A stretch of DNA of 64,000 nucleotides, from assembly GCA_013416795.1 (NCBI GenBank), contig RQSC01000009.1, positions 99,146 to 163,145 on the forward strand. The letters are read 5' to 3'. A model generated the notes under the pieces. It was not told the DNA's origin. It did not search any database and saw only the letters and a program-made list of their open reading frames with translations. The position numbers and the translations under genes are program-made. Origin of the DNA: Prasinococcaceae sp. CCMP 1430. Lineage: Eukaryota > Plantae > Prasinodermophyta. Position 1 is the first letter of the stretch, and every line of letters begins with the position of its first letter. Shown piece after piece: positions 1,807 to 61,662 of the stretch.

Positions 1807-3689
1807 CTGCGGTCGCGCGCGCGGCCGTCCCAGGCGGCGCGACGCCCGCGCTTGACGCGGCGCCCCGCACGCCGCGNNNNNNNNNNNNNNNNNNNNNNNN
1901 NNNNNNNNNNNNNNNNNNNNNNNNNNNNNNNNNNNNNNNNNNNNNNNNNNNNNNNNNNNNNNNNNNNNNNNNNNNNNNNNNNNNNNNNNNNNNNNNNNNN
2001 NNNNNNNNNNNNNNNNNNNNNNNNNNNNNNNNNNNNNNNNNNNNNNNNNNNNNNNNNNNNNNNNNNNNNNNNNNNNNNNNNNNNNNNNNNNNNNNNNNNN
2101 NNNNNNNNNNNNNNNNNNNNNNNNNNNNNNNNNNNNNNNNNNNNNNNNNNNNNNNNNNNNNNNNNNNNNNNNNNNNNNNNNNNNNNNNNNNNNNNNNNNN
2201 NNNNNNNNNNNNNNNNNNNNNNNNNNNNNNNNNNNNNNNNNNNNNNNNNNNNNNNNNNNNNNNNNNNNNNNNNNNNNNNNNNNNNNNNNNNNNNNNNNNN
2301 NNNNNNNNNNNNNNNNNNNNNNNNNNNNNNNNNNNNNNNNNNNNNNNNNNNNNNNNNNNNNNNNNNNNNNNNNNNNNNNNNNNNNNNNNNNNNNNNNNNN
2401 NNNNNNNNNNNNNNNNNNNNNNNNNNNNNNNNNNNNNNNNNNNNNNNNNNNNNNNNNNNNNNNNNNNNNNNNNNNNNNNNNNNNNNNNNNNNNNNNNNNN
2501 NNNNNNNNNNNNNNNNNNNNNNNNNNNNNNNNNNNNNNNNNNNNNNNNNNNNNNNNNNNNNNNNNNNNNNNNNNNNNNNNNNNNNNNNNNNNNNNNNNNN
2601 NNNNNNNNNNNNNNNNNNNNNNNNNNNNNNNNNNNNNNNNNNNNNNNNNNNNNNNNNNNNNNNNNNNNNNNNNNNNNNNNNNNNNNNNNNNNNNNNNNNN
2701 NNNNNNNNNNNNNNNNNNNNNNNNNNNNNNNNNNNNNNNNNNNNNNNNNNNNNNNNNNNNNNNNNNNNNNNNNNNNNNNNNNNNNNNNNNNNGCGCCGGC
2801 GCCGCGCGCAGTGGCGCCCGCCCGCCGGCGCTGGCCGCCCCTCCCCCCGGGTTCGCACGCGCGACACCCGGTTCCACGCCCCGGATCCACGCCATCAGCC
2901 CGCGCCCATTCCCAAACACACCCGTTCCATTCGCCCCGGACCGGGGTCGACGCGCGCGCCGCGGAACCCGAGACCTCGGGACTCAACCCAAGGTTCGGAA
3001 GCATCTGAGGATTCCACGGAATCCACTGTTTATTGGAATTGTATCGAGCATGGCGCGGAACCCCAACGGTCGGAATTTTTGTTTGGGGGTCGGTTCCTTC
3101 CTTCCCCCCTCGGTTGCTTGGTTGCGTGGCTGGTTGGTGGTTCGAATCCGAAACGGGGCCGGAAGGGGCGCGCGCGCGCGCGGCCGTTCGCGCGGCGGGC
3201 CCCGGATTCGACCCGGTTTCGCCCGCGCGGCGCTTTCGCGCGCGNNNNNNNNNNNNNNNNNNNNNNNNNNNNNNNNNNNNNNNNNNNNNNNNNNNNNNNN
3301 NNNNNNNNNNNNNNNNNNNNNNNNNNNNNNNNNNNNNNNNNNNNNNNNNNNNNNNNNNNNNNNNNNNNNNNNNNNNNNNNNNNNNNNNNNNNNNNNNNNN
3401 NNNNNNNNNNNNNNNNNNNNNNNNNNNNNNNNNNNNNNNNNNNNNNNNNNNNNNNNNNNNNNNNNNNNNNNNNNNNNNNNNNNNNNNNNNNNNNNNNNNN
3501 NNNNNNNNNNNNNNNNNNNNNNNNNNNNNNNNNNNNNNNNNNNNNNNNNNNNNNNNNNNNNNNNNNNNNNNNNNNNNNNNNNNNNNNNNNNNNNNNNNNN
3601 NNNNNNNNNNNNNNNNNNNNNNNNNNNNNNNNNNNNNNNNNNNNNNNNNNNNNNNNNNNNGGGCGGCGGCGGCGGCGGCGCGAGCCGCG

Positions 3690-4632
3690 ATGGAGTGGGA
3701 GCTCTCGCCGCTGCCCGGCGACGAGGCCGCGGCGGCGGCCGCGCGCAAGGAGCCGTGGTTCGTGTCGGACAAGGAGAACATGGACCCCCGCGCGGCGATA
3801 AGGCGCCGCCGCGGTGGGCACGGGCTCGGCGGCGGCGGGCCGCCGAACGGGGGTGCGTCGCGCGCGCCGCGCAGCTCCCCCTCCTCCCCCCTCCCCCCTC
3901 CCTCGCGCCCCCTCGCATTTTCGCACGGCGCGAGTTCGAACGGCGCTTTCGGCGCGGGCCGCCCGGCGGGCCCTGGCGAGCCCCAGCACGGCCGCCACGG
4001 CCATCCCCGACCCCTCCGGAGGCCCGAGCGCAGAGCATCGCGTCGGCACGCGCGCTGACCCCCCCCTGCCCCCCTCCTCCCTCCCTTCCCGCGCCCCCCC
4101 TTTGCGTCCCCCTCTCCGCTCCGCTCCTGCGTTCGTTCGTATTCTTTCGGGCGGCAAAACGAAACACCCCTCCGCGAAAACGCGAAAACGCGGCGCAGGC
4201 GCCGGGTGGGCGACGCCGTCCGATAAGGACGCCGTCCAGGCGCGGCTGGGGGGGGAGGGCGCGACGGGCGACGCGATGGACATCGCGGCCGACATAACGC
4301 CGCAGTCGGTGCTCCTGCGCGCGCCCGGCGCCGCGCCGGGGACCGGCGCAACGCCCGTGCCGTCGACCGGCGGACGCAGCACCGGCGGGCGCAGCGCGGG
4401 CGGCGTGCGCACGCCGATGATGGACATCACGCCCGAGTTCGTCCGCGCGGAGGACGCGGTGGACTCGGCAGCGCAGCAGGAAAAGGAGAACGAGCGACAG
4501 GCAAAGGCGCGAGACGCCGCGGCGAGGTACTACACGGCGACGGGGTACGGCCTGAGACACCAGCACCAGAAGGAGCAGCAGGAGCAGCGGGCGGGCTCTG
4601 CGGGCAGAGCGCCTCTGCGGTCGATGCGATGA
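3690..4632 (+). CDS. Small disordered protein with KEN box, D-box-like motif and C-terminal MR tail; candidate APC/C regulator (exons 3690-3852, 4199-4632)
   Basis: The phase-1 intron 3853-4198 (GTGCGT...GCTGAC...CAG) restores one frame. Motifs are DKENMDP, RTPMMDIT, EKEN and terminal RAPLRSMR-stop. The start may extend into the upstream gap. Confidence 0.65.
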
Positions 4633-4923
4633 TTCGGCGGGGTCGGGCCGCCGCCGCTAAGGCGCGGCTACCGACGCGTGCGCACCGCGCACACAGACAC
4701 ACAGATACACAGGCAGACAGCGGCGGGCTGCGCGGGCGATCGTGGCTCCATCGCCACGCGCCCGGCTGCGCCACGCCCGTCGACGCCACAACCGAAAGAC
4801 ACACGCCGCGAGAGCTCCTAGCGAGCAGACGCGCGAGACGGGCGACCTGTCCATACCTCGACCGGCGAGATAATCAATAATTTGCACACGTCGCGAACGC
4901 CACGCGCGGGAGGGGTTTGCAGC

Positions 4924-5172
4924 TCACTGAGCGAGCGCCGCGTCGAAGCCAGCGCCAGACACGGCGTCGATGAGCTTGTCAGCGATGCCCTCCGCGGCGT
5001 CCGCGGTGAGCTCGACGGTCGCGGTCTTCGCCTCGAGGTCCACCGCGACGCTCGCGACGCCCTCGACACTCTCGAGGGCCTTGGTCACGCTCGACGAGCA
5101 CCCGTCGCACATCATGCCGTCGACGCGAAGCGCCACGGCGGCGGCGGCGTCCGCCGCGCGCGCCGCGCGCCG
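4924..5172 (-). CDS. Heavy-metal-associated (HMA) domain copper-chaperone-like protein, N-terminus in gap
   Basis: LRVDGMMCDGCSSSVTKALESVEGVASVAVDLEAKTATV contains the MxCxxC HMA signature. Confidence 0.85.
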   Translation of the reverse strand, partial: RRAARAADAAAAVALRVDGMMCDGCSSSVTKALESVEGVASVAVDLEAKTATVELTADAAEGIADKLIDAVSGAGFDAALAQ

Positions 5173-5548
5173 NNNNNNNNNNNNNNNNNNNNNNNNNNNN
5201 NNNNNNNNNNNNNNNNNNNNNNNNNNNNNNNNNNNNNNNNNNNNNNNNNNNNNNNNNNNNNNNNNNNNNNNNNNNNNNNNNNNNNNNNNNNNNNNNNNNN
5301 NNNNNNNNNNNNNNNNNNNNNNNNNNNNNNNNNNNNNNNNNNNNNNNNNNNNNNNNNNNNNNNNNNNNNNNNNNNNNNNNNNNNNNNNNNNNNNNNNNNN
5401 NNNNNNNNNNNNNNNNNNNNNNNNNNNNNNNNNNNNNNNNNNNNNNNNNNNNNNNNNNNNNNNNNNNNNNNNNNNNNNNNNNNNNNNNNNNNNNNNNNNN
5501 NNNNNNNNNNNNNNNNNNNNNNNNNNNNNNNNNNNNNNNNNNNNNNNG

Positions 5549-8500
5549 CCTCAGCGCCGAGGATCTGGCGTGCCTCCCGCCGACGCGCTCGTGGCGCGCG
5601 AAGACGCCGCCGCGGAGCTCTCCGCGGCGCTCGGAGGCCTCGTCGCCGCGCGCGGCGCGGCGCCGTCGCCGGGCAAGGGCGTGCTTGCCGCCAAGGGCGG
5701 CGTCGCCAACAAGGAGAACGGCGCCGAGAATGGCGCGGCGGCGTCGACGCCCAACTCTGGCATCCTCAAGAAGGTGCACGCGCGCACGGCACTTGCGCCC
5801 CTGTCTTCGCGCAAGACGGACTCGCCCGTGCGCAAGAAGCCGCGCAAGAGTATGAACCGCCGCGTGAGCTTCGCGCCGGTCCTCACGGAGACGCGCTTCT
5901 TTGGCGAGGACGGCGGCGAAGCGTCCGACGCCGCGGCCGCGGACGCGGCGGCGCCAGCGCCTGTCGAGCATGCCCCTGCCGCCGCAGCGCCGCCTGCCGA
6001 TCCGGCCGCAGAGCAGGCGGAAGTCGCCGCCATGGATGACGACGAAGTGGTGGCCGCATCGCCCGAGGCATCGCCGATGCAAGCGGCGTCCTCGCCTGCT
6101 CCCGACGCAGTGTCGGGGGGCGACGAGCTCGCCGACGAGGCGGACGAGGCCTCCCCGGGGGAGGCCGCAATGGCGGCCGCGGCAAACTTCGACGCGGCCG
6201 ACTTTGCATCGCCGACGCTGGCAGCACTGAACGCAGACGCGGAGGTCCCGGACAGCGCCTCGCCCGCCCATGTCGAGGGCGAGCAGTGCGACACCACCGT
6301 TTTCATCCGCGCGCACCTGCCCGCTCGCGAGAAGACCGCCGGGCAGATGCCCGACACGATCGACCTTGCCAACCAGCTGGACGCCGCCGGCGAGCCAACG
6401 AGCACGGCAGCGCTTCCCAGTCTCTCGGCAATCGCGGACGCCGACGAGGCAGCTGCGGACGCACCGCATGCGACACTCGCAGCGTGGCGCGCCGCGGGTA
6501 GCCCAACGGTCCCCAGCCCGGCCGCTCCTGAGGCTGGTGACATGGCCGTGCCGCCGCCCCCTGAGCCCACTTGCACCATGGATCTTCCGAACATATCGGC
6601 AATTGTTGACGCCGATGAGGCGGCGGGTGAGCCCGCAGACGCCACCACCGGAGCGGAGAACGAGGGGCCCGCTGAGCCCACCTCCACGATGAATCTGCCG
6701 AACATGGCGGCGCTCGTTGATGCCGATGAGGCGGCGGGCGAGCCCGCCGACGGAGACGGCGCGGCCGAGGAGGAGCCTGCTGAGCCCACCTGCACGATGG
6801 ACCTGCCCAACATGGCGCAGCTCATCGAGGCCGATGAGAAGGCCGGCGCCGCTGTCGCGACGCCGTCGGCTGGTGCGGCTCCCTCGGAACCCATGGCCCC
6901 ATCCACTGGAATGCCTGCGGGGGTCGTGGGCGGCGCCTTCAACGCCCTTCTTGGCGTGGCCCAGACGCCCGGTGCCACTTTTTACACCGCCACCACGGAT
7001 CCCTCCCCGATGCCAACGCCGGCTGATGCGACCTCTGCTTCGCCTGCTCCTTCCGAGGCCGATGGCCCGTCGCCCAGCCCGTGCGCGCCGTCTGCTGGCC
7101 CGTCCCCGGAAGCGCCCCCGAGCGCACAGTCAACCGGGTCGGCCGCCATGGAATTGACGCTCGCACCGGCAGAGATCGCAAACGCCGTGTCGCCGGCTTC
7201 GTTCCTGCCAGGCCGTGTGTCTATGGGCTCCGTTCGCAACTCGATGGGATCGCTGGCGGACACCCCCACGGGCACGGCGGGCGATGTCACTCTGGGCATC
7301 ACTATGGCTCTCGAGAAAGCTCTCGAGGGCGGCGAGCACCCCCGCTGGGGCGCTGCCGCCAATGGGGGCGATGAAGGCCAGGACGGCACCGCGCTCACCG
7401 ACGAGCTGCCGCTGGCAGCAGAGGCGGAGCCGCCTGCCGCCGCTACGCCTGCGTCAGAGGCCGCAGACTATGGCACCGGCCTCACCGAGGAGCTGCCTGC
7501 GGCCGCCGAGGAGGCCGTCGCCGCCCCCTCGCCGGTGGCGTCAGAGGCTCCGAGCATGGGCACCGGCCTCACCGAGGAGCTGCCTGCGGCCGCCGAGGAG
7601 GCCGTCGCCGCGCCTTCGCCGAAGCCGTCTGAGGCTCCGAGCATGGGCACCGGCCTCACCGAGGAGCTTGATGGCGATGGTGCTGACTACGGCACGGGCC
7701 TCACCGAGGAGATCGCCCCAGGTGCTCTCGCGGCCGCAACCGAGTACGGTACTGGTATCACCGGGGAGATGAACGAAGCCGACTATGGCACAGGCCTGAC
7801 CGAGGAGATCGCTCCTGGTGCCCTTGAAGCTGCCCAAGCCGCTATGGTGCGCCCGTCGACAACCATGCATACGGCGGCTCTCAACCAGACATACCACACG
7901 GGGGCCACAGCCACAATTGATGTGGGCGGACCAGCGAGCACGCGCCCGTCTGCGACGTATCATACCGGCGCGACCGCCACAATCCACGAGGCGGCAATGG
8001 AGGCCGATGAGGAGGACGAGCCCCTCGAGGATGAGCCAGCGCAGGCAGATGCTACCGAGTACCATACGGGTGCTACGGAGACGTACCACACTGGCGCAAC
8101 CGCCAACATCTCCGATGCCGCGGCCGAGCCCGAAGAAGCTGATGCCGATGTGCAAGAGGCTGAGATGCCTGAGATGCAAGCTGACATGATGGAGGGCGGG
8201 ATGGCCTTCGATGCGCACTCTTTCCTCGAGGAGCACGGCGTGTCCTTCCGCACCGACAACCTCGAGAATGCGCGCCGCAAGAGCGCATTCCCGGCGCCGA
8301 TTCTGCTCGAGTCGCCGGAGCCCGCGCCTACCACGGCACGCGGCTGCATGTCGATGCTCTCAATTGCCGGGCCCGAGCTGCGTTCCAAGGAGGAGGCCGT
8401 CGCAGAACTCACTCGTGCAAACGCCAGCCGCCGCGCGGCGGCTGGTCGCCACGCCGCCGCGCTGGCGGAAGCGCCACCGGCTGCGCTGCTCGCACTGGGC

Positions 8501-9631
8501 CCCGATGGAGCTCGCGATGAGCTGCGCTCGCTAAAGCGCCGCTGCCGCATCTCCGCGGACCGCGCGTGGGCGGAGATGCGCCACGCCCTTGAGGTTAGCC
8601 GTGCGCGTGCCCTCGAGGCCGAGGCAGAAAAGCTCGTTGCGGAGAAGAGTCGCATCGCCACCGAAATGCTGGCGCTCAGGGAGCTGGCCGGCCTCGTTCG
8701 CAGCGCAGCCGCGTCCGCGGCGGAGGGCGCAGCCGCCGCGCGTGCCAAGACGGCCGACGCAGCGACGTCCGATGCCACAGCTGCCGAGGCGCGCGCGGCG
8801 CTGTCAGTGCGCCGCGCCGAGGTCAGGGGTTTCGCCGCGCAGCGCCGCGACGCCGCTGCACGTGTCGAGGCGCTGCGCGCCCATCTCGCGGCTGCCAGTT
8901 CTGAGGCGAAGCTCCTGCGCGAGCGGCGGCAAGCCGCGCAGCAGCGCGCGATTGCTGCAGGCCGCGCGCTGTCGACAGCACCGACGCCCGCGACCAAGTC
9001 GCGCATCATTGCCAAGGCTGCGGAGGTCAAGGAGGAGCTCGACGTCCTGCAGGGGATGCACGCGTGGACTATCACGGCGTTGCCGGGCAAGGGGTGCAGC
9101 GGCAGCGACAGTGGGAACCTGTGCGTCGACGTACAGGGTCTGATGCGGTATGCACTGGGGAACGGGAGGGTTGAGCTCGCCGAGCCGGGCTCGCGCTTTG
9201 CGAGCTTCATCGCGGCGCTTGCGGGCATGCCTGAAGGCGCGAATGCCGCCGGCGGGTGGACCGATGCACGGCCGGCGGCGTTCGCCGTGCAGGCGTTGGA
9301 TGTCGCAGCGGCGCGTGCTGCATCGGCCATTCGCATGGCCAACCGCGCTGTGATGCATCCCGCTGTGGTCAGTGCCGCCCCGGCTGTTAATGCCGCGGGC
9401 GCGCCGGTTGTGGCGCTCACAGCAGCGGGCAGCGCCACCGGCAGCCGGCTGAGTGCAGAGATCGACGTCGTGAGCGGGGCGTGCACCGCCACACTGCTGG
9501 CAGCCGGAAGTTCGGCACTGACGGCTGATGTTGTCGCCCAGGCGGCGCGGGCGGCGCCTGCAGGAGTCGACGCCGCTTGCACTGCACTCGGAGAGCTGCT
9601 GCTTGGTGACAGCGCCGCGGGCAGCGAGTGA
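5549..9631 (+). CDS. KNL1: Kinetochore scaffold KNL1/Spc105/Spc7 (start in or near the gap)
   Basis: N-terminal SGILKK (about 5756) and RRVSF (about 5858) PP1-docking pair, acidic repeats with TM(D/N)L and one MELT (7148-7159), then a coiled coil and a folded C-terminal region, as expected for KNL1. Confidence 0.85.
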   Translation, partial: PQRRGSGVPPADALVAREDAAAELSAALGGLVAARGAAPSPGKGVLAAKGGVANKENGAENGAAASTPNSGILKKVHARTALAPLSSRKTDSPVRKKPRKSMNRRVSFAPVLTETRFFGEDGGEASDAAAADAAAPAPVEHAPAAAAPPADPAAEQAEVAAMDDDEVVAASPEASPMQAASSPAPDAVSGGDELADEADEASPGEAAMAAAANFDAADFASPTLAALNADAEVPDSASPAHVEGEQCDTTVFIRAHLPAREKTAGQMPDTIDLANQLDAAGEPTSTAALPSLSAIADADEAAADAPHATLAAWRAAGSPTVPSPAAPEAGDMAVPPPPEPTCTMDLPNISAIVDADEAAGEPADATTGAENEGPAEPTSTMNLPNMAALVDADEAAGEPADGDGAAEEEPAEPTCTMDLPNMAQLIEADEKAGAAVATPSAGAAPSEPMAPSTGMPAGVVGGAFNALLGVAQTPGATFYTATTDPSPMPTPADATSASPAPSEADGPSPSPCAPSAGPSPEAPPSAQSTGSAAMELTLAPAEIANAVSPASFLPGRVSMGSVRNSMGSLADTPTGTAGDVTLGITMALEKALEGGEHPRWGAAANGGDEGQDGTALTDELPLAAEAEPPAAATPASEAADYGTGLTEELPAAAEEAVAAPSPVASEAPSMGTGLTEELPAAAEEAVAAPSPKPSEAPSMGTGLTEELDGDGADYGTGLTEEIAPGALAAATEYGTGITGEMNEADYGTGLTEEIAPGALEAAQAAMVRPSTTMHTAALNQTYHTGATATIDVGGPASTRPSATYHTGATATIHEAAMEADEEDEPLEDEPAQADATEYHTGATETYHTGATANISDAAAEPEEADADVQEAEMPEMQADMMEGGMAFDAHSFLEEHGVSFRTDNLENARRKSAFPAPILLESPEPAPTTARGCMSMLSIAGPELRSKEEAVAELTRANASRRAAAGRHAAALAEAPPAALLALGPDGARDELRSLKRRCRISADRAWAEMRHALEVSRARALEAEAEKLVAEKSRIATEMLALRELAGLVRSAAASAAEGAAAARAKTADAATSDATAAEARAALSVRRAEVRGFAAQRRDAAARVEALRAHLAAASSEAKLLRERRQAAQQRAIAAGRALSTAPTPATKSRIIAKAAEVKEELDVLQGMHAWTITALPGKGCSGSDSGNLCVDVQGLMRYALGNGRVELAEPGSRFASFIAALAGMPEGANAAGGWTDARPAAFAVQALDVAAARAASAIRMANRAVMHPAVVSAAPAVNAAGAPVVALTAAGSATGSRLSAEIDVVSGACTATLLAAGSSALTADVVAQAARAAPAGVDAACTALGELLLGDSAAGSE
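7472..7665 (+). repeat. 87-bp tandem repeat encoding GTGLTEELPAAAEEAVAAPSPxxSEAPSM within KNL1
   Basis: Near-identical units begin at 7472, 7559 and (partial) 7646. Confidence 0.9.
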
Positions 9632-17812: not shown

Positions 17813-18525
17813 GAGAAAAAACGCCGAGCGGAGAGAAAACAAAGCCCCCCCGAAAAAGTAAAAAAAAAAAAATCCGCGGCGCGCAGATACTCTCTCTCGC
17901 GCGCGGGAAAGCGTCAGCGCGGGCCGGCGCGCGTTTAGGGTCGAAAATGGACGGCGCAGCTACGGTATCATTTTGACCTCGGGTATCGGCATTGTTTGGG
18001 GTTAGGGTTAGTGAGTTTCAGGAAAAAGGGGGGCAGGGGGGATGGGGGGACCGGGGGCGGAGTTTGCGTTTCGCCGCGCGCGCGCGCGCGCGCCCGCGTT
18101 TCGCTTTCGCTTTCGCTCCGCGCGCGTGTCGCGGGACGGGCGCGGCGCGATGGACGTTCGAGCGGATTTCGCGAGGGGTTTCCGCGGGTTTTCCCCGCGC
18201 GCGCGCGCGCGCGCGCGCGGCGCACCGCCGCGATATCTGCGCTCACTGCGGCCCCGCGNNNNNNNNNNNNNNNNNNNNNNNNNNNNNNNNNNNNNNNNNN
18301 NNNNNNNNNNNNNNNNNNNNNNNNNNNNNNNNNNNNNNNNNNNNNNNNNNNNNNNNNNNNNNNNNNNNNNNNNNNNNNNNNNNNNNNNNNNNNNNNNNNN
18401 NNNNNNNNNNNNNNNNNNNNNNNNNNNNNNNNNNNNNNNNNNNNNNNNNNNNNNNNNNNNNNNNNNNNNNNNNNNNNNNNNNNNNNNNNNNNNNNNNNNN
18501 NNNNNNNNNNNNNNNNNNNNNNNNN

Positions 18526-23119: not shown

Positions 23120-24400
23120 ATGGCGCTTATGACAACGCGCACCCTCGAANNNNNNNNNNNNNNNNNNNNNNNNNNNNNNNNNNNNNNNNNNNNNNNNNNN
23201 NNNNNNNNNNNNNNNNNNNNNNNNNNNNNNNNNNNNNNNNNNNNNNNNNNNNNNNNNNNNNNNNNNNNNNNNNNNNNNNNNNNNNNNNNNNNNNNNNNNN
23301 NNNNNNNNNNNNNNNNNNNNNNNNNNNNNNNNNNNNNNNNNNNNNNNNNNNNNNNNNNNNNNNNNNNNNNNNNNNNNNNNNNNNNNNNNNNNNNNNNNNN
23401 NNNNNNNNNNNNNNNNNNNNNNNNNNNNNNNNNNNNNNNNNNNNNNNNNNNNNNNNNNNNNNNNNNNNNNNNNNNNNNNNNNNNNNNNNNNNNNNNNNNN
23501 NNNNNNNNNNNNNNNNNNNNNNNNNNNNNNNNNNNNNNNNNNNNNNNNNNNNNNNNNNNNNNNNNNNNNNNNNNNNNNNNNNNNNNNNNNNNNNNNNNNN
23601 NNNNNNNNNNNNNNNNNNNNNNNNNNNNNNNNNNNNNNNNNNNNNNNNNNNNNNNCGTGGCGGCCCGAGCTGGCGCTCGGGCCTCGGGCGACGCGCTCGC
23701 TGCGCGCGACCGGCTGCTTGACGCAGTTGAGGGCACGCGGCGCGGGGCAGCGACCACGCCCGCCGCGCGCGCGGCCATCGAGGAGGCCGTGGACGAGCTC
23801 GAGCGCCTCGGCAAGGGGAAGACGTACACTGGCGCCGAGCTGAGCGCCGCATGGCGGCTAGTGTGGACGACCGAGAAGGAGACGCTTTGGCTGCTAGAGA
23901 ATGGCGGGCTCTTCGGCACGGCGGCGGGCGAGAGGTACGAGGGCGCGTCGATGCCCAGTGGGGGCGTGGTTTGGTCGTGCTGGTGCATGCGCACGGGTGT
24001 GTGTGAGGGTGGGGGTTACGGTGTGCAGCGCGCGCGTGCTCGAATATGCGCGTGGCTGCTGACGCAGGTGCATACGCGGTCTTGCTCCACTAGCTACCAA
24101 GTGATTGACGTGGAGGCCGGCAGCCTGAACAACATAATCACGTTTCCGCCGGGGGGGCTGTTCAACGTCGACAGCGACATAAGCGCGGACGGCGCGCAGC
24201 GCACCAACTTCCAGTTCACGGCGGCCGCGCTCACCGTCGGCGAGCCCTTCCCGCTTCTCGGTGGGAGGACCTTCAACCTTCCCCCGAAGGGCCAAGGGTG
24301 GTTCGACACCGTGTACATGGACGAGAGGATACGAGTCGCGAAGGACATCCGCGGGGACACGCTGGTGGTGGAGCGCTCGGACTACGTGATCCCGAAATAG
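23120..24400 (+). CDS. PAP/fibrillin family protein (contains an N-gap; in-frame intron 23935-24093)
   Basis: LLDAVEGTRRG...IEEAVDELE...LSAAWRLVWTTEKE...GWFDTVYMDERIRVAKDIRGDTLVVER. Confidence 0.85.
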   Translation: MALMTTRTLEXXXXXXXXXXXXXXXXXXXXXXXXXXXXXXXXXXXXXXXXXXXXXXXXXXXXXXXXXXXXXXXXXXXXXXXXXXXXXXXXXXXXXXXXXXXXXXXXXXXXXXXXXXXXXXXXXXXXXXXXXXXXXXXXXXXXXXXXXXXXXXXXXXXXXXXXXXXXXXXXXXXXXXXXXVAARAGARASGDALAARDRLLDAVEGTRRGAATTPAARAAIEEAVDELERLGKGKTYTGAELSAAWRLVWTTEKETLWLLENGGLFGTAAGERYEGASMPSGGVVWSCWCMRTGVCEGGGYGVQRARARICAWLLTQVHTRSCSTSYQVIDVEAGSLNNIITFPPGGLFNVDSDISADGAQRTNFQFTAAALTVGEPFPLLGGRTFNLPPKGQGWFDTVYMDERIRVAKDIRGDTLVVERSDYVIPK

Positions 24401-42864: not shown

Positions 42865-44611
42865 NNNNNNNNNNNNNNNNNNNNNNNNNNNNNNNNNNNN
42901 NNNNNNNNNNNNNNNNNNNNNNNNNNNNNNNNNNNNNNNNNNNNNNNNNNNNNNNNNNNNNNNNNNNNNNNNNNNNNNNNNNNNNNNNNNNNNNNNNNNN
43001 NNNNNNNNNNNNNNNNNNNNNNNNNNNNNNNNNNNNNNNNNNNNNNNNNNNNNNNNNNNNNNNNNNNNNNNNNNNNNNNNNNNNNNNNNNNNNNNNNNNN
43101 NNNNNNNNNNNNNNNNNNNNNNNNNNNNNNNNNNNNNNNNNNNNNNNNNNNNNNNNNNNNNNNNNNNNNNNNNNNNNNNNNNNNNNNNNNNNNNNNNNNN
43201 NNNNNNNNNNNNNNNNNNNNNNNNNNNNNNNNNNNNNNNNNNNNNNNNNNNNNNNNNNNNNNNNNNNNNNNNNNNNNNNNNNNNNNNNNNNNNNNNNNNN
43301 NNNNNNNNNNNNNNNNNNNNNNNNNNNNNNNNNNNNNNNNNNNNNNNNNNNNNNNNNNNNNNNNNNNNNNNNNNNNNNNNNNNNNNGCTGCGGCAGGCAC
43401 ACCGCGCGCGCGCGCGCAGCACCTCGCTTGGCCGACGTCGCGCGCGGCGACGCCCGCAGGTCAAAGCGAACGCGGACGCGCGGCGCTGACTCAGCGCGCT
43501 TTTTTAGCGCGCCGAGGGGGCCCCGCCGCGCGGAGCAGGGACGCCGAGCGCAACGAGAAAGGCTTTTTTGACTGTGCGTATCAAATGCCATCGAAAAAAG
43601 GACGGGCGCGCTCCAGTACAAACAAACCTCTCTGCAGACAGTGTAAAAAGCTTTTTACTGTACAGTGCGGAAAGTCTCTATGAGTAGCCTGGGTAAAACT
43701 GGGCGCCCTGGCGAAGCGGCGCGCGCTGGAACGATTTTGAGGCGGGCGTAAATCCGCCTGGCGAGGCGAACGATTTTAAAGACGACCTCTGTACATACTG
43801 GAGTCTAGACTGCAGTACATCGGTGTACATCAAATGCCACGGAGAAAAACAGTCCCGAAGGCCGAACGCGGCCTGAAGTTTGGGCGTATTCTCGCCCAGG
43901 AGGGTCTGTACAGTACTTATCGTTCGCAGAGCGTTTTTTTATGGGTTTTTCGTTCTGGGTGTGGTTTTTGGTTTCGGGGGATGCGTTTGGGTTGGGGTGA
44001 CCTTTCTCGAAGGCGCGATGAATTCCAGAAAATCTGCCGCACCGCATGCGCAAGAAAAGGCGCGAGGCCCGCGGGTTCGTGCGGTGTCCCCCGCGAATCA
44101 TCCGGAATCGGCGCGAGATCCTCATGATAGCGTTTGGTTTTTTGTTTGCGGTTTGGATCCCAACCGGCCGGTGACGGACTTTTTGATCGGGGCGTCGCGC
44201 GCCGCTCGGTCTTCCTCCTGTAAACATGTCTCCCGTGGGTATGTACTTCGACCGCTTCGACGGGGTTCCTCCGCGATCGATGCGCTGCGGCGGGGCGCGC
44301 CTCCTCGATCCGATCGCCCATCCGACGCCCCGCGGCGGGGCACGCGTGGCGGCGGCATGGGCCGGCAATCCCAACCAATCCTGCCCGGGTTGGTCCCACC
44401 GCGGCCGCGTGGGGCGCGCGCGCGCCCCCACGTGTAATGCACGTGCGAATGGGGGCCCCCACGTGGATGCGTTTTCGCATTGATTTTGATGGCCCGTTGC
44501 ATCCATATCAAGACGCACTGGGAGGGCGCGCGTCCGGAGGACTCCGCAATTTGGGTTGCGTTCGCATTTCGTGATTGAGGATTTTTATCAGGGTTCAATA
44601 CGCAGAGTAGG

Positions 44612-54009: not shown

Positions 54010-55395
54010 AGGAGCGCGGCCCCGTCAGCTTCCGCGTCGTGCGCGCCAACCTGCGCATCGGCTCGCTCACTCTCGACTCGCTTGTGTGGAAGAATGGCAT
54101 GGCCGACTGGCGGCCCGCGCGTGACGTGCCTCTCTTTCGCGCGGCCGTCGCTGCCGGGGGTTCTCCCATGTTTGCAGGGGGCGTCACTCCCACGGCCAGG
54201 CGCGGCGCGGGCGGTGCCGACGCTGCGAATGGCGTGACGCCCAGCGCCGTGCCGCCCGTGACGCCAGCGGCTGCGAAAGCACAGGTACGCGCGCGCGCTC
54301 GCCGGGCGAGCACGCATTCACCGGCGTCGCGCGGTTGGCGGTGACGCCTGCGGCGGTGAATATTGCAACTCCTGTGGCTCGGAGCGCTCGCGCTGCTGCG
54401 TGCCCCGCCCGACGCGCTGACACATACAACGCCCCACATGTCTCGCCTAGGCGACTTCGGCAGCGGCAGCCACCCCCGGCTTTGTAGAGGGCACCGGCGT
54501 GGCCACTACAACACCGGCACCGTCGAAGACGGTGCGCCGCCTCCGGATGGCTAACCCCGAAGAATGGTGGTACCTCGGCGCGGGTGGGGTGGAAATGGGG
54601 CCGTACGGCGTTGGCGAGGTGCGCTCGATGCTCAACGACGGCACCATCACGCAGCACACGTGGGTGTGGGGTGGGGCGACAGGCAGGTGGGCGAGGGTCC
54701 TGGACTTGCCGCCACAGCTGATGACTGCGACGGACGGGGGCCCGCAGTCCGTACGCGCGGACGGGCCTGCGGGCGCGGCTGTTGGCGGCGAGTTCATGTC
54801 ACGAGGCCCTCACATGAATGGGATGGGCACAGGCCCTACTCTCCACCAGCCGCCCCCCATGTCGCCGATGCGCGCCCACGGGGACGCGCTGGCGACCGAG
54901 CTGGCAGAGTGCAAGGCGGCGCTCTCAAAGACGCACGAGCTGCTCGTCGCGAAAGACGCGAAACTCAAAAAGTACAAGGCCAAGTTGCGGCAGGCAGGCG
55001 ATGAACTGCGCGCGCGTGACGGCGAGCTGGCTGTGCTCAGAGAAATGCTGGCGCAAGCGCGCGAAATGGCAGTCGGGGTCGGCGTGCACGCAAGTGGTGC
55101 GGTCGCCGCGCGCGTGCCAGTGCGGACGCCAACGCACACGAATGGTGCCGTCCACGCAAGCGATCCGATGCAGACGCCAATGCAAGGGTCGGAGCCCATG
55201 CAGAAGGCGTACACACGTGCTCAGCAGGTGCGATCATCACCGCAAGTGGCATGGGCTGCACAGGAGCGGGGGGGTTGCGGCGCGCCCGCAGGTGACGGCG
55301 GCGCCACGGGCGAGGTCAGTGGCGCAGGCTCGGTCGGCCTGAGCTCGGCCGAGATCGCATCGATCAAGGCTCTGCTGTCCGCCGTTGCGGTATGA
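54010..55395 (+). CDS. Protein with two GYF_2-like domains and a coiled coil (exons about 54010-54284 and 54451-55395; first exon not found)
   Basis: GPVSF...LTLDSLVWKNGMADWRP and WWYL...MGPYGVGEV...ITQHTWVWG...WARV. The phase-0 intron 54285-54450 is in frame. Confidence 0.7.
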
Positions 55396-55674
55396 CCCGC
55401 GCCCCCGTTGCCTTGGTCGGGCGGTGGTCAAGGCACGCCGGGCTCCTGGCGTCTCTCAGAGAATCGGCGCCGATGCGCGGCCCGCGGCGCAAATCAGCGT
55501 AGGCAGCTGCCGCGGCAGCGCGTGCGCGCCGCCATAATCCAGCACACTCGCATCCAATACCTTCGAGACGAATGAGTCGAGGCGCGTCGCCGCGGCTCGA
55601 GTCTTGCATCGAGGAAGGGATGCTTATAGCTATGTTACAAGGAAAATGCGCGCGGGGCGGGATGGTGAGCAGCA

Positions 55675-56144
55675 TCATCTCGACGAACGCTTCTTCTTCT
55701 TCTGCGGCGTGGCGCCATTCTTCCCCTGGCCCTTGCCGCCGTTGCCCTTCCCCTTACTTTTGTCGCCATCGCCAACGGCCTCCTGTTGCGCGCGCCCCAC
55801 GCACGCGCCGAGGAGAGGGTCAGGGGGCATGGTGGCGGCGAATCGCACGCTTGAGCGCGCTCTTGCACCCTAACAGCCCGATCGGCGAAGGCGGGGCTCC
55901 AAGCGCGCACACGGACCTTGCCGTCCAGCTTCTCCGCGGAGGGCAGCCACTTCACCGGGTTCTGGTTGAAATATGGCCAGTCGGGCACCGCCGCGACGAA
56001 CGCCAGCAGCACCCCCGCTGCGTACACCACGAGCATGAGGTTGTAGCTCTCGCGCACGTAGCCAATCACCAGCGCGAGCAGCATGAACGCGAACACGATG
56101 CCCTGGTAGAGCTGCTCGCTGAGCTCCTGCCCCTTGAAGTCCAT
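55675..56144 (-). CDS. SPCS1: Signal peptidase complex subunit 1 (SPC12) (exons 56144-55917, 55782-55675)
   Basis: MDFKGQELSEQLYQGI...IGYVRESY...VPDWPYFNQNPVKWL is the SPC12 signature. Confidence 0.9.
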
Positions 56145-56354
56145 GGCCGCGGGCGGCGCGGCGCGGCGCGGCGCGCGCGGCGCAGCGCGGGCTTCTCTCT
56201 CAGGCCGCAGTCCAGAGCAGACACAGTCCGTAGCTGCTGGTGCGCGCGCGGCGGCGCCCACTCCCGCGCCTGCCCGGCGCGGCGGGGGGTGAAACGACGG
56301 CCACGGCGAAGGCGCGCGGCCGCCCCATTCGCGCCGCGCGCGGCGCGCGCTCAC

Positions 56355-56660
56355 CTTGTCGTAGTGGTTGTCACTCCAGATGGGCTCCTCCATGCTCTGC
56401 CAGACCTTAAACGCCTTGAGGCGAGACTCGAGCAGCCATTCGGGCTCCCCCTTCTTCGCGGAGATGAGGCGCACGGTATCCTCGGTGAGACCCTTGTCGA
56501 TGGTCTCAGACTCGATCTCCGTCTTCCACCCGTGCTTGTACGGCTTTGCGAGCAGCTTGTTGAGCCGCTCGGTCTCGGTGAGCTCCTCCTCTTCGGCCGC
56601 CGGCGCCGCGGCGGCGCCCGACGCCGCCGTCTCCGCGCCTACGCCAACAGCAGCCGCCAT
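56355..56660 (-). CDS. SUFB: First exon only of Fe-S assembly scaffold SufB
   Basis: KPYKHGWKTEIESETIDKGLTEDTVRLISAKKGEPEWLLESRLKAFKVWQSMEEPIWS followed by a GTGAGC donor. No downstream SufB exon is found in the window. Confidence 0.85.
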
Positions 56661-56892
56661 CAAAACGCACTCGGCCTGCGCGGCCCATGCGAACTGATGG
56701 CGCCGCGCCGCTCCGCCTTTTTTTTCCGCGTGCTTTTCGGGCGAATATTCGCGGCAAAAGAAAGCGCGCGAAAGAAAACAGAAACAGGGGCGACGCGCTG
56801 CTGGAGGGGGCGCGTGGCCAGCGGGCGGTCTTACACGAGCCGAGCCAGGCGCGGCGCTGCGGCTGCTGGGGCCCTCGGCGCTGGCATCGCGC

Positions 56893-57964
56893 TCACGCCG
56901 CCTTGATGCACTCGTCGACGTCCGCCGGTGCGAAGATGAGCTCGCCGTTGCTCTCCAGCTGGACCTGGTAGACGGCCGCGGGGTCCCCTGCAGCCCACTG
57001 CGGGTGGCGCCACCAGTGGGCGACGACCTTCCCGTGGACGAGCTCGCCCGCGTTGCACACAACGCGCGTGCCGACTGCGAAGCGCGGGGTGGCGCCACAC
57101 ACGTCCAGCACGCTGTCGAGCACTTCAATCGCGCCGTGCTCCCTAACTCCCGCAAATCCCGGGCCCTCCGCCCAACCGCGAAGAAAGAACGCCAACTCCG
57201 CGCGCTTCGTGTCGCCATCAGCGCCCGGATCGCAGCACAGGCAGGCCACCGCCGCGGCCATGCCCATGCCGCGGTTCAAGTTGAAGATGTTGAAACCCTT
57301 GCCAGCTGCGTTTTTCGCATTCTCTGCGTGCCGCTTCAGGCTCTCGCCAAGCGATATGAGCGTGCGCGCGGACAGCGGCGCACGAGAGCCATCCGACACC
57401 GCCGACAGCATGGTGTGCGTGCGCTTGATCGCGAGGCTCATGTCGCCCGCCGCGCCGATCGCAGCAGCACACGCCTCGTCGATGAGGTCCATCTCCGCCG
57501 CGACCGCCGGCGGCGGCGCTCCGGCTGTGCTCATGTCGACGTCCCCGGACTCAGCCGACTGCATCGCCATGCACACGGCCTCCGCCGCGTCGAGGTACGC
57601 GTTGTAGGCTGCGACGACATCGTCGAGGTCACCGTCAGCGCCTGCTGCGAGAATCACATCCCACGTGAGTGCCGTCGGCGGCATGAAGTTCAAGCCCACT
57701 GTGCTACTGTCTACTGCCTCGGTCGCCGCGATGAGCGCGTCGATGTAGGCACGGTACGCGGCGAGCGCCTCCTTGCGCGCTCCGCCCACCACTGCCTTGC
57801 GCGCCGCGGCGAGCTCCACAGCGGCGGGTTCGTTCGCCCCCGCGCCCCCGCCCACTCCCGCTCCAACTTCCGCACTCGCGCTCGCCCGCCCCGTGATCCC
57901 ACACCGGCGCGCTTGCCGCGCCAGCCTCGGCGCCGCCGCACGCCCCGGCCGCCTCGCAGCGCCC
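56893..57964 (-). CDS. Hypothetical protein with a C-terminal SH3/KOW-like domain; 5' end lost at a single N
   Basis: Long frame ending PRFAVGTRVVCNAGELVHGKVVAHWW...AVYQVQLESNGELIFAPADVDECIKAA. Confidence 0.65.
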
Positions 57965-60900: not shown

Positions 60901-61662
60901 NNNNNNNNNNNNNNNNNNNNNNNNNNNNNNNNNNNNNNNNNNNNNNNNNNNNNNNNNNNNNNNNNNNNNNNNNNNNNNNNNNNNNNNNNNNNNNNNNNNN
61001 NNNNNNNNAGCCCCGAGCGAGCGCGCCTCCCCAAGGCCGCGGCCAGCGAGCCCGCCCCCGGTGGCGGCCGCGGCCCACCAACAGCCGCGGACGGCGCGCC
61101 GGCCGAGCAGTAGTAATACAGTAATTGCCGCGAGCCCCGCCTCCGTTTGGCGCGCGCGCGCGGTCCGCGACGGCCCGGCGTCGGGACGCGATGTTCCCAG
61201 TCATTCGCCCGCCTCGAGGGTGCCTGCTTGCTTGGTCGGGCGCGCAAAGACTTTGACTTTGTGTCAGATTGGCCGAAACGCCTTCTTGGATCTTGCTCGT
61301 GCTCTTTAGGCTGTGGTGCGTGGCAGGCGTGCGTGCGCGCGGCACGTACAGTACCATCAGATGGTACGTACCATCAAATGGCATGCGCGCCGCGCCGCGC
61401 GGGCGATGTGATGTGTCGCGCGCGGCCCCTCGCGCGCGCCGGCGAGGGCGCGCGCCGGCGAGGGCCCGAGAGCTGCGGTGGGGTCATGGGCGCCGGACCC
61501 CCACGGAGGGGGTCCCGCCGCCAATATCAGAATTACGGGGTAGTCAACAAAAAAAGGGCGAGGGCCGCGCGGGTCGCGCGACGCCCGGCTCTCTGGGGTA
61601 GGGTAGTAGGGGAGGGGGGAGGGGCCCGTGCTGCAGTGGGATGGCCGGCGCGGCATCGGGGC

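Follow-up and report, generated by a model that had tools for sequence, protein, structure and literature searches.

A candidate APC/C-binding protein with the motif order of plant OSD1/UVI4 in a prasinodermophyte alga

[quoted passage not shown] The question is raised by a gene at positions 3690 to 4632 of a 64,000-nucleotide stretch of DNA from Prasinococcaceae sp. CCMP 1430 (contig RQSC01000009.1, positions 99,146 to 163,145 of the forward strand), which we refer to as the window and within which all positions below are counted. An earlier note on this DNA, made from its letters alone, had proposed a UVI4/OSD1-like or securin-like regulator here. Our own reading, which we favor but hold tentatively, is that a genuine two-exon gene is present here, encoding a disordered protein of at least 198 amino acids (aa) that probably binds the APC/C through three motifs, namely, a KEN box, a D-box (destruction box), and an MR tail (Met-Arg at the C-terminus), placed in the same order as in OSD1/GIG1, UVI4/POLYCHOME, and Mes1. 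What leads us to this reading is what was observed: the motifs and their order, the coding potential, the disorder together with a C-terminal helix, and a modest, order-specific likeness to the plant family.

APC/C inhibitors such as Emi1/Emi2, Mes1, Acm1, and OSD1/UVI4 look unrelated across kingdoms and are missed by homology searches, and Cross and Umen give GIGAS/OSD1 as a case of inhibitors beyond the reach of such searches. One phylostratigraphic study placed UVI4 no deeper than the vascular plants, and the literature that we searched yielded no report of any APC/C inhibitor or OSD1/UVI4-like protein from an alga. To call the present gene the first algal candidate for the OSD1/UVI4 kind of regulator is reasonable but unproven, the proposal being drawn from motifs in a single species. 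A candidate recognized by motif order provides a concrete, testable gene for the algal cell cycle, with its multiple fission and its diel-gated division in picoplankton, and it bears on whether this class of regulator goes far back in the green lineage or has been reinvented repeatedly.

The gene and its motifs

The candidate gene sits between two masked runs of the window (runs of N) and is made up of the following parts.

3690..3852, + strand: exon 1, with ATG at 3690, 54 codons plus 1 base, reading MEWELSPLPGDE...PPNG; the start is provisional, with a mask before 3661
3853..4198, + strand: putative intron, GTGCGT...GCGCAG, rich in C; two other GT donors, 3814 and 3934, also fit the frame
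4199..4632, + strand: exon 2, with TGA at 4630-4632; carried by two 99%-identical metagenome contigs

The two exons join in frame to give 597 nt and 198 aa, in agreement with the spliced protein of about 200 aa that the earlier note had described. When each exon is read in its own frame, the G+C content at third codon positions (GC3) reaches 0.96 for exon 1 and 0.90 for exon 2, and the same measure reveals no consistent codon periodicity in the intron at 3853-4198 or in the 3′ flank. With a codon log-likelihood model trained on the long open reading frames (ORFs) of the window, a codon scan gives strongly positive ratios in frame 0 over 3663-3812 and in frame 1 over 4203-4622, the frame-1 signal beginning 70 nt upstream of an internal Met at 4276. 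This switch of the coding frame from 0 to 1 requires an intron. Since, in addition, the single AG in 4050-4226 lies at 4197-4198, the join is well motivated as a prediction from sequence, while the exact donor is not fixed, as each of three GT donors (3814, 3853, and 3934) would keep the frame with this acceptor. Upstream, frame 0 runs open into the masked bases that extend to 3660, and the N-terminus is therefore provisional; the true start may lie upstream. We note that the N run at 3245-3660 covers the 5′ end of the candidate together with its proximal promoter. Separately, the 3′ end of the putative intron (4150-4190) holds a tandem CGCGAAAACGCGAAAACGCGG, which yields two minus-strand E2F-like sites, TTTGCCGC at 4151 and TTTCGCGG at 4172.

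Ala, Gly, Arg, and Pro are abundant in the encoded protein. Its features, with D-box positions numbered P1 to P9, are as follows.

3768..3788, + strand: extended KEN box DKENMDP, aa 27-33; fits [DNE]KENxxP exactly and aligns to the plant GxEN/KEN box
3801..3818, + strand: basic patch RRRRGG, aa 38-43; 7 residues past the EN of the KEN box and aligned to plant RRGRG (first profile match and mafft --add, both below)
4204..4239, + strand: GWATPSDKDAVQ, aa 57-68; a possible degenerate positional counterpart of plant SWYPRTPLRDIT and the nearest thing to the securin WAGE motif
4276..4323, + strand: MDIAADITPQSVLLRA, aa 81-96; the DITPxxV..RA segment occurs here a second time, internally and lacking the Arg at P1, as read from the sequence
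4408..4449, + strand: D-box-like RTPMMDITPEFVRA, aa 125-138; R1, T2-P3 (a minimal site for cyclin-dependent kinase, CDK), M4, D6, I7, T8, P9
4456..4599, + strand: predicted long helix, aa 141-188, from a single-sequence AlphaFold2 (AF2) model
4480..4491, + strand: second KEN box, EKEN, aa 149-152; inside the predicted helix
4606..4629, + strand: C-terminus RAPLRSMR, in which a match to the canonical D-box RxxLxxM merges with the MR tail

The strings that the earlier note had quoted are all present where it placed them, and the several TP sites of which it spoke number five, in addition to one SP site.

The KEN consensus has been given as [DNE]KENxxP and that of the D-box as RxxLx[DE][hydrophobic]xN, with R1, L4, and N9 critical (Alfieri et al., PMC5717348); P3 of the D-box is often Pro, and CDK phosphorylation at P2 blocks recognition (PMC5717348). 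Measured against this consensus, RTPMMDITP retains R1, D6, and I7 and carries M4 and P9 instead of L4 and N9. The only strict RxxLxx[ILVM] match in the candidate is RAPLRSM at the extreme C-terminus, and RxxL is absent from aa 1-124, the region before 3661 being masked. In a peptide study, Pro3 with Ile7 was optimal and RAPLSDITN was the best natural-type binder, and its authors point back to Acm1, which a high-affinity D-box makes an inhibitor and not a substrate (PMC12401543). P3, D6, I7, and T8 of the candidate are the high-affinity residues of that study, and together with R1 they belong to the residues that were optimal for binding to Cdc20. From residue frequencies of the genome's long ORFs, a KEN box together with an MR end is expected in ∼0.2 of every 10,000 proteins; when R.P[LM].D[IV][TS] is required as well, the expectation from residue frequencies falls to ∼1e-5 per 10,000 proteins, or ∼1e-9 per protein.

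AF2 predicts that the protein encoded by exon 2 is disordered except for one helix (aa 141-188) that closely precedes the free tail, with a predicted local distance difference test score of 73-83 there and ∼50 elsewhere. Arabidopsis GIG1/OSD1 is also disordered by AF2, with C-terminal helices that reach its MR tail. A related arrangement is known from Nek2A, in which an MR tail beside a dimerizing helix acts as an IR-tail mimic and attaches to the C-box site of Apc8 in the core APC/C (PMC5717348).

These parts suggest how such a protein might act. DKENMDP would sit on the top face of the WD40 propeller of CDC20/CDH1 and RTPMMDITP would fill the D-box groove, where CDK phosphorylation of the TP at P2-P3 (T126) would possibly switch binding off. 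The C-terminal Met-Arg, displayed by the long helix, would dock in a tetratricopeptide repeat groove (the IR-tail/C-box site of APC3 or APC8). Multivalent docking of this kind would keep the protein bound to the APC/C, where it would act as a pseudo-substrate that brakes the destruction of cyclin and securin. APC/C binding, inhibition over mere turnover, cell-cycle timing, and common descent with OSD1/UVI4 are what we infer from the features above.

Comparison with the seed-plant OSD1/UVI4 family

The reference family was gathered from a seed in which exon 2 was aligned with four 21-residue D-box blocks taken from Figure S1 of PMC3406007, followed by a second search from 11 diverse matches. 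This gave ∼200 POLYCHOME/GIG1 proteins, all from seed plants; the profiles used to test the candidate were rebuilt from the fetched plant proteins alone and hold 179 full-length members, to which the counts below refer. No OSD1/UVI4 protein from outside the seed plants appeared among the best 120 of 344 protein matches, which are all angiosperm, and a metagenome scan with the plant alignment returned grass and dicot DNA only, with no sequence bridging the plants and the alga. The family is covered by no Pfam family and by no solved structure.

According to Figure S1 of Cromer et al. 2012, the plant proteins begin with an N-terminal MPExRDR, followed by a GxEN/KEN box and then a Pro, an RRGRG patch, and LPSWYPRTPLRDIT with xVRAIERRR after it; angiosperm members go on with K.LLDIT and a TPxKKLLNSIDxVEK helix and end in ...RTLMSMR (PMC3406007). 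The D-box and the MR tail of OSD1 are both required for CCS52A1 binding and function (PMC3406007). In our alignment, P4 of the D-box is Leu in 179/179 members and WYP precedes the D-box in 178/179. P2-P3 is always Thr, Ser, or Ala followed by Pro, and P9 is never Asn, being mostly Ala, His, or Ser. The seed-plant D-box is thus non-canonical and could be phosphorylated by CDK. The tail is LMSMR in 165/179 members, and LRSMR also occurs. The KEN box lies 18-35 aa from the D-box, and the D-box lies 115-183 aa from the C-terminus.

Set beside this family, the candidate is likewise disordered and close in size (∼200-250 aa for OSD1/GIG1 and UVI4/POLYCHOME), and it presents the same succession of a KEN/GxEN box with a Pro and an Arg-rich patch, R-T-P-x-x-D-I-T without Asn at P9, C-terminal helices, and an L[MR]SMR end; it differs in that a further KEN box is present and the DITP segment is duplicated. 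The KEN box, Pro, and basic patch are found as DKENMDP-RAAI-RRRRGG. The L[ML][ST][ML]R tail is found as LRSMR, the same five residues that occur in plant members, and RTPMMDIT shares 6/8 residues with plant RTPLRDIT, to which it is aligned both by the second profile match and by hhalign. The identity with plants at P3, D6, I7, and T8 may simply reflect an optimal D-box.

A search with the plant-only hidden Markov model (HMM, 179 sequences; hmmsearch) yields two weak, colinear local matches totaling 6.2-6.3 bits. The first pairs the plant KEN-plus-basic block with candidate residues 19-42 (1.4-1.8 bits by itself), and the second pairs the plant RTPLRDIT..VRAIERR block with residues 125-160. This score is reached by 9-11 of 20,000 composition-matched shuffles (p ∼5e-4) and by 1/378 six-frame ORF chunks of the window. 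A position-specific scoring matrix (PSSM) built from the last 10 residues of the 179 plant proteins gives AGRAPLRSMR 7.5 bits, with p ∼1.1e-4 on a genome-like background and ∼1.5e-4 against shuffles, and the score is equalled by 0/670 other ORF ends. The Fisher combination of the HMM and tail results is ∼1e-6 if independence is assumed. Because the gene was chosen for its motifs, we express this as an expectation per 10,000 proteins, which is ∼0.01.

When the candidate is aligned globally (BLOSUM62) to 11 diverse plant members, the outcome points the same way, with a mean score of 61.5 vs 24.5 ± 7.0 for full shuffles (z 5.3; 0/3000). The z value is 3.2-4.1 against shuffles within blocks of 6-20 residues, which keep local composition, and 2.3-3.3 against shuffles that reorder the blocks and leave the motifs intact; as controls, the reversed candidate scores 18.2 and the best of 277 ORF chunks scores 46.5. 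When the candidate is added to the plant alignment with mafft --add, KEN pairs with KEN, RRRRG with RRGRG, W58..TP with WYPRTP, MMDI with eudicot LLDI(T), TPE with TPEKK, and LRSMR with LMSMR. W58 lies 29 aa from the KEN box and 141 aa from the C-terminus, which are plant-like distances, and W58-TP itself is no D-box. In global mode, hhalign gave a meaningless alignment of 2 columns.

Relatives of the protein itself are few. A word-indexed search and an exhaustive HMMER search of 1.84 billion representatives with exon 2 returned only two near-identical 118-aa metagenome ORFs and low-complexity matches; a scan of JGI metagenomes with exon 2 found no relatives, and the candidate has no Pfam match and no PDB match. 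The two ORFs belong to marine metagenome contigs (L001 and L002, from TARA and another ENA assembly) that are 99% identical to the window and align to its positions 3668-5144; both begin at 3668, and so the masked 5′ end is not recovered. Differences between the strains spare KEN, RTPMMDIT, EKEN, and MR but are too few to be informative, and one strain carries R40P in the basic patch. We also observe that many of the strain differences in the exons create Pro codons.

Several of these results weigh against our reading. On the side of the family comparison, the candidate has Met at P4, a key degron residue that is invariantly Leu in plants, and GGV instead of WYP precedes RTPMMDIT. Its KEN box is 96 aa from the D-box, and the D-box is 74 aa from the C-terminus, both outside the plant ranges. 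The N-terminal MPExRDR is absent, the visible start being MEWELSPLPGDE with the true N-terminus maybe under the mask before 3661. The profile score would be far from significant in a database search, the local mode of hhalign aligns just the 8-column D-box (P 0.022), and shuffle nulls differ from real disordered proteins. [quoted passage not shown] On the side of the gene, the splice and the start codon are sequence predictions and the 5′ end is under the mask. Our searches gave no orthologue beyond the near-identical strains and hence no support from motif conservation. The exon differences between strains stand at 8 non-synonymous to 1 synonymous, and the VRA that follows the D-box-like motif is VRP in both other strains. 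The non-synonymous excess may reflect either a genuine relaxation of constraint or errors in the assembly of DNA that is very rich in GC.

Taken together, the suggestion of a UVI4/OSD1-like protein holds as far as the motif triad, whose presence is very unlikely to be accidental, its colinear order, and the modest statistics are concerned; it does not extend to the invariant Leu at P4, to WYP, or to the KEN-to-D-box spacing, and the 6.3 bits count against it as well. Because Leu P4, WYP, the spacing, and the N-terminal motif are lacking and the triad can be convergent, we do not claim membership in OSD1/UVI4. That the protein works like OSD1/UVI4/Mes1 is better supported than that it is an OSD1/UVI4 orthologue, and descent from the plant family is possible. 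Mes1, the meiotic APC/C inhibitor of Schizosaccharomyces pombe, is instructive here: it is a small pseudo-substrate with a KEN box, a D-box, and an MR tail in the same order (PMC3406007). It is unrelated in sequence, was compared by description only, and shows that the architecture can arise independently. A further reading, possible but in our view doubtful, is that OSD1/UVI4-type pseudo-substrate inhibitors of the APC/C go back to the ancestor shared by green algae and plants and that the candidate is their first recognized algal member, with a relocated, CDK-gated D-box and an ancestral layout of KEN box, basic patch, W-TP, and MR tail. If that were true, inhibitors of the OSD1/UVI4 type would be no invention of land plants or of seed plants.

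Inhibitor, substrate, or coincidence

The alternative that survives best makes the protein a substrate of the APC/C and not its inhibitor, either the securin of the alga (PATRONUS/RSS1 type) or an early-destroyed mitotic protein with an MR tail, like Nek2A. We regard this as unlikely, even though KEN boxes and D-boxes mark substrates as much as inhibitors and D-box affinity separates the two only quantitatively. Nek2A joins a KEN box, a dimerizing helix, and an MR tail, and the candidate resembles it in its KEN box and in the helix adjoining its C-terminal MR; Nek2A is, however, a kinase with a folded domain and a substrate, and the candidate has no folded domain. An early substrate of the Nek2A kind is compatible with all that is seen. 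Securins are disordered and fast-diverging and are known in green algae, for example, in Ostreococcus lucimarinus, and the candidate has a WA dipeptide (in GWATPSDKDAVQ) and an acidic stretch past its D-box.

The securin form of this alternative can be examined against PATRONUS/RSS1, a family that is APC/C-regulated, present in green algae, and, like the candidate, disordered with an N-terminal KEN/DEN box. Its members carry an N-terminal DEN/KEN box and D-boxes, a WAGE motif that is extremely well conserved from monocots to algae, and an acidic C-terminus. The sole WA of the candidate fails the pattern W-A-[KR]-[DEG]-G-[VI]-E, with Q at the pivotal E; the earlier proposal of a securin-like protein thus found no match in this one feature, judged by pattern only. 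Securin D-boxes are N-terminal and stand ahead of WAGE, whereas those of the candidate lie after its WA and a double D-box is not found in its visible N-terminal part, the upstream sequence being masked. An MR tail has not been described for PATRONUS/RSS1, and no separase-type pseudosubstrate patch was recognized in the candidate.

We consider it quite unlikely that the gene encodes a lineage-specific disordered protein of unrelated function whose motifs are coincidental in a sequence rich in Ala, Gly, Arg, and Pro. Such an origin would agree with the lack of homologues in the exhaustive HMMER search and of a Pfam match, with the missing D-box L4 and N9, and with strain differences that are almost all non-synonymous. 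It is also favored by selection bias, the gene having been picked for its motifs, and by nulls that are shuffles and not real disordered proteins. It is opposed by the joint expectation for the KEN box, R.P[LM].D[IV][TS], and the MR end (∼1e-9 per protein, as above), by a global alignment score above all 3000 full shuffles and all 277 ORF chunks, by a tail PSSM p of ∼1e-4, and by a KEN box that fits a 7-residue extended consensus.

Improbable, finally, is a wrong gene model in which exon 1, read through to a stop at 4056-4058, and a 118-aa ORF from Met 4276 are separate products, with the KEN box and the MR tail then on different proteins: the splice is a prediction, prokaryote-style gene callers on the metagenome contigs predict the 118-aa ORF only, frame-0 GC3 stays fairly high until ∼4020, and a donor consensus from a heuristic intron search of the window was too noisy for use, but the frame-1 coding signal from ∼4203 runs ahead of Met 4276, 3853-4198 is without consistent periodicity, the GTGCGT donor and the single possible AG connect both coding frames exactly, and the 118-aa product by itself would still have the D-box-like motif, EKEN, and the MR tail.

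Genomic surroundings

Upstream of the candidate, beyond the mask, lies one further feature.

2793..3244, no strand assigned: unmasked 452-nt island, a possible promoter, with four AACGG sites (the core of the mitosis-specific activator element, MSA); CCCAACGGTC at 3062 fits the plant MSA consensus, and an E2F-type TTTCGCGC lies at 3234

AACGG cores occur at a mean of 0.52 per 452 nt in the window, and four or more are found in 0.09% of tiles. These putative MSA and E2F sites are suggestive of cell-cycle control. Assignment of the island to the candidate is unproven because 416 masked bases intervene, and it may serve an upstream gene. The only other four-AACGG cluster in the window (55351-55802) adjoins the gene for the signal-peptidase subunit SPC12 at 55638-57218 on the minus strand (E 4e-25), and for this reason the MSA core cannot be taken here as a validated marker of mitosis.

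Downstream, the minus strand carries at 4927-5136 a 70-aa ORF that runs toward the candidate; it encodes a heavy-metal-associated (HMA) domain of the MxCxxC type (Pfam HMA, E 4e-18), resembling a copper chaperone of the ATX1 kind. An A/T-rich stretch at ∼4860-4890 separates the 3′ ends of the two genes. This opposite-strand gene lies between the candidate and a KNL1-like ORF, which the earlier note had put at about 1 kb. The distance is roughly right, as a long Ala/Pro/Glu-rich ORF at 5549-9628 on the plus strand follows ∼0.9 kb downstream, after the N run that gives way at 5548; its identification as KNL1 is less secure, the Knl1_RWD_C match being weak (E 2e-4, 21.9 bits, under the Pfam cut-off of 27.8 bits). 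The N run at 5173-5547 covers the start of this KNL1-like gene. Across the window, N runs occupy 1877-2792, 3245-3660, 5173-5547, 18259-18525, 23150-23655, 42865-43386, and 60901-61008.

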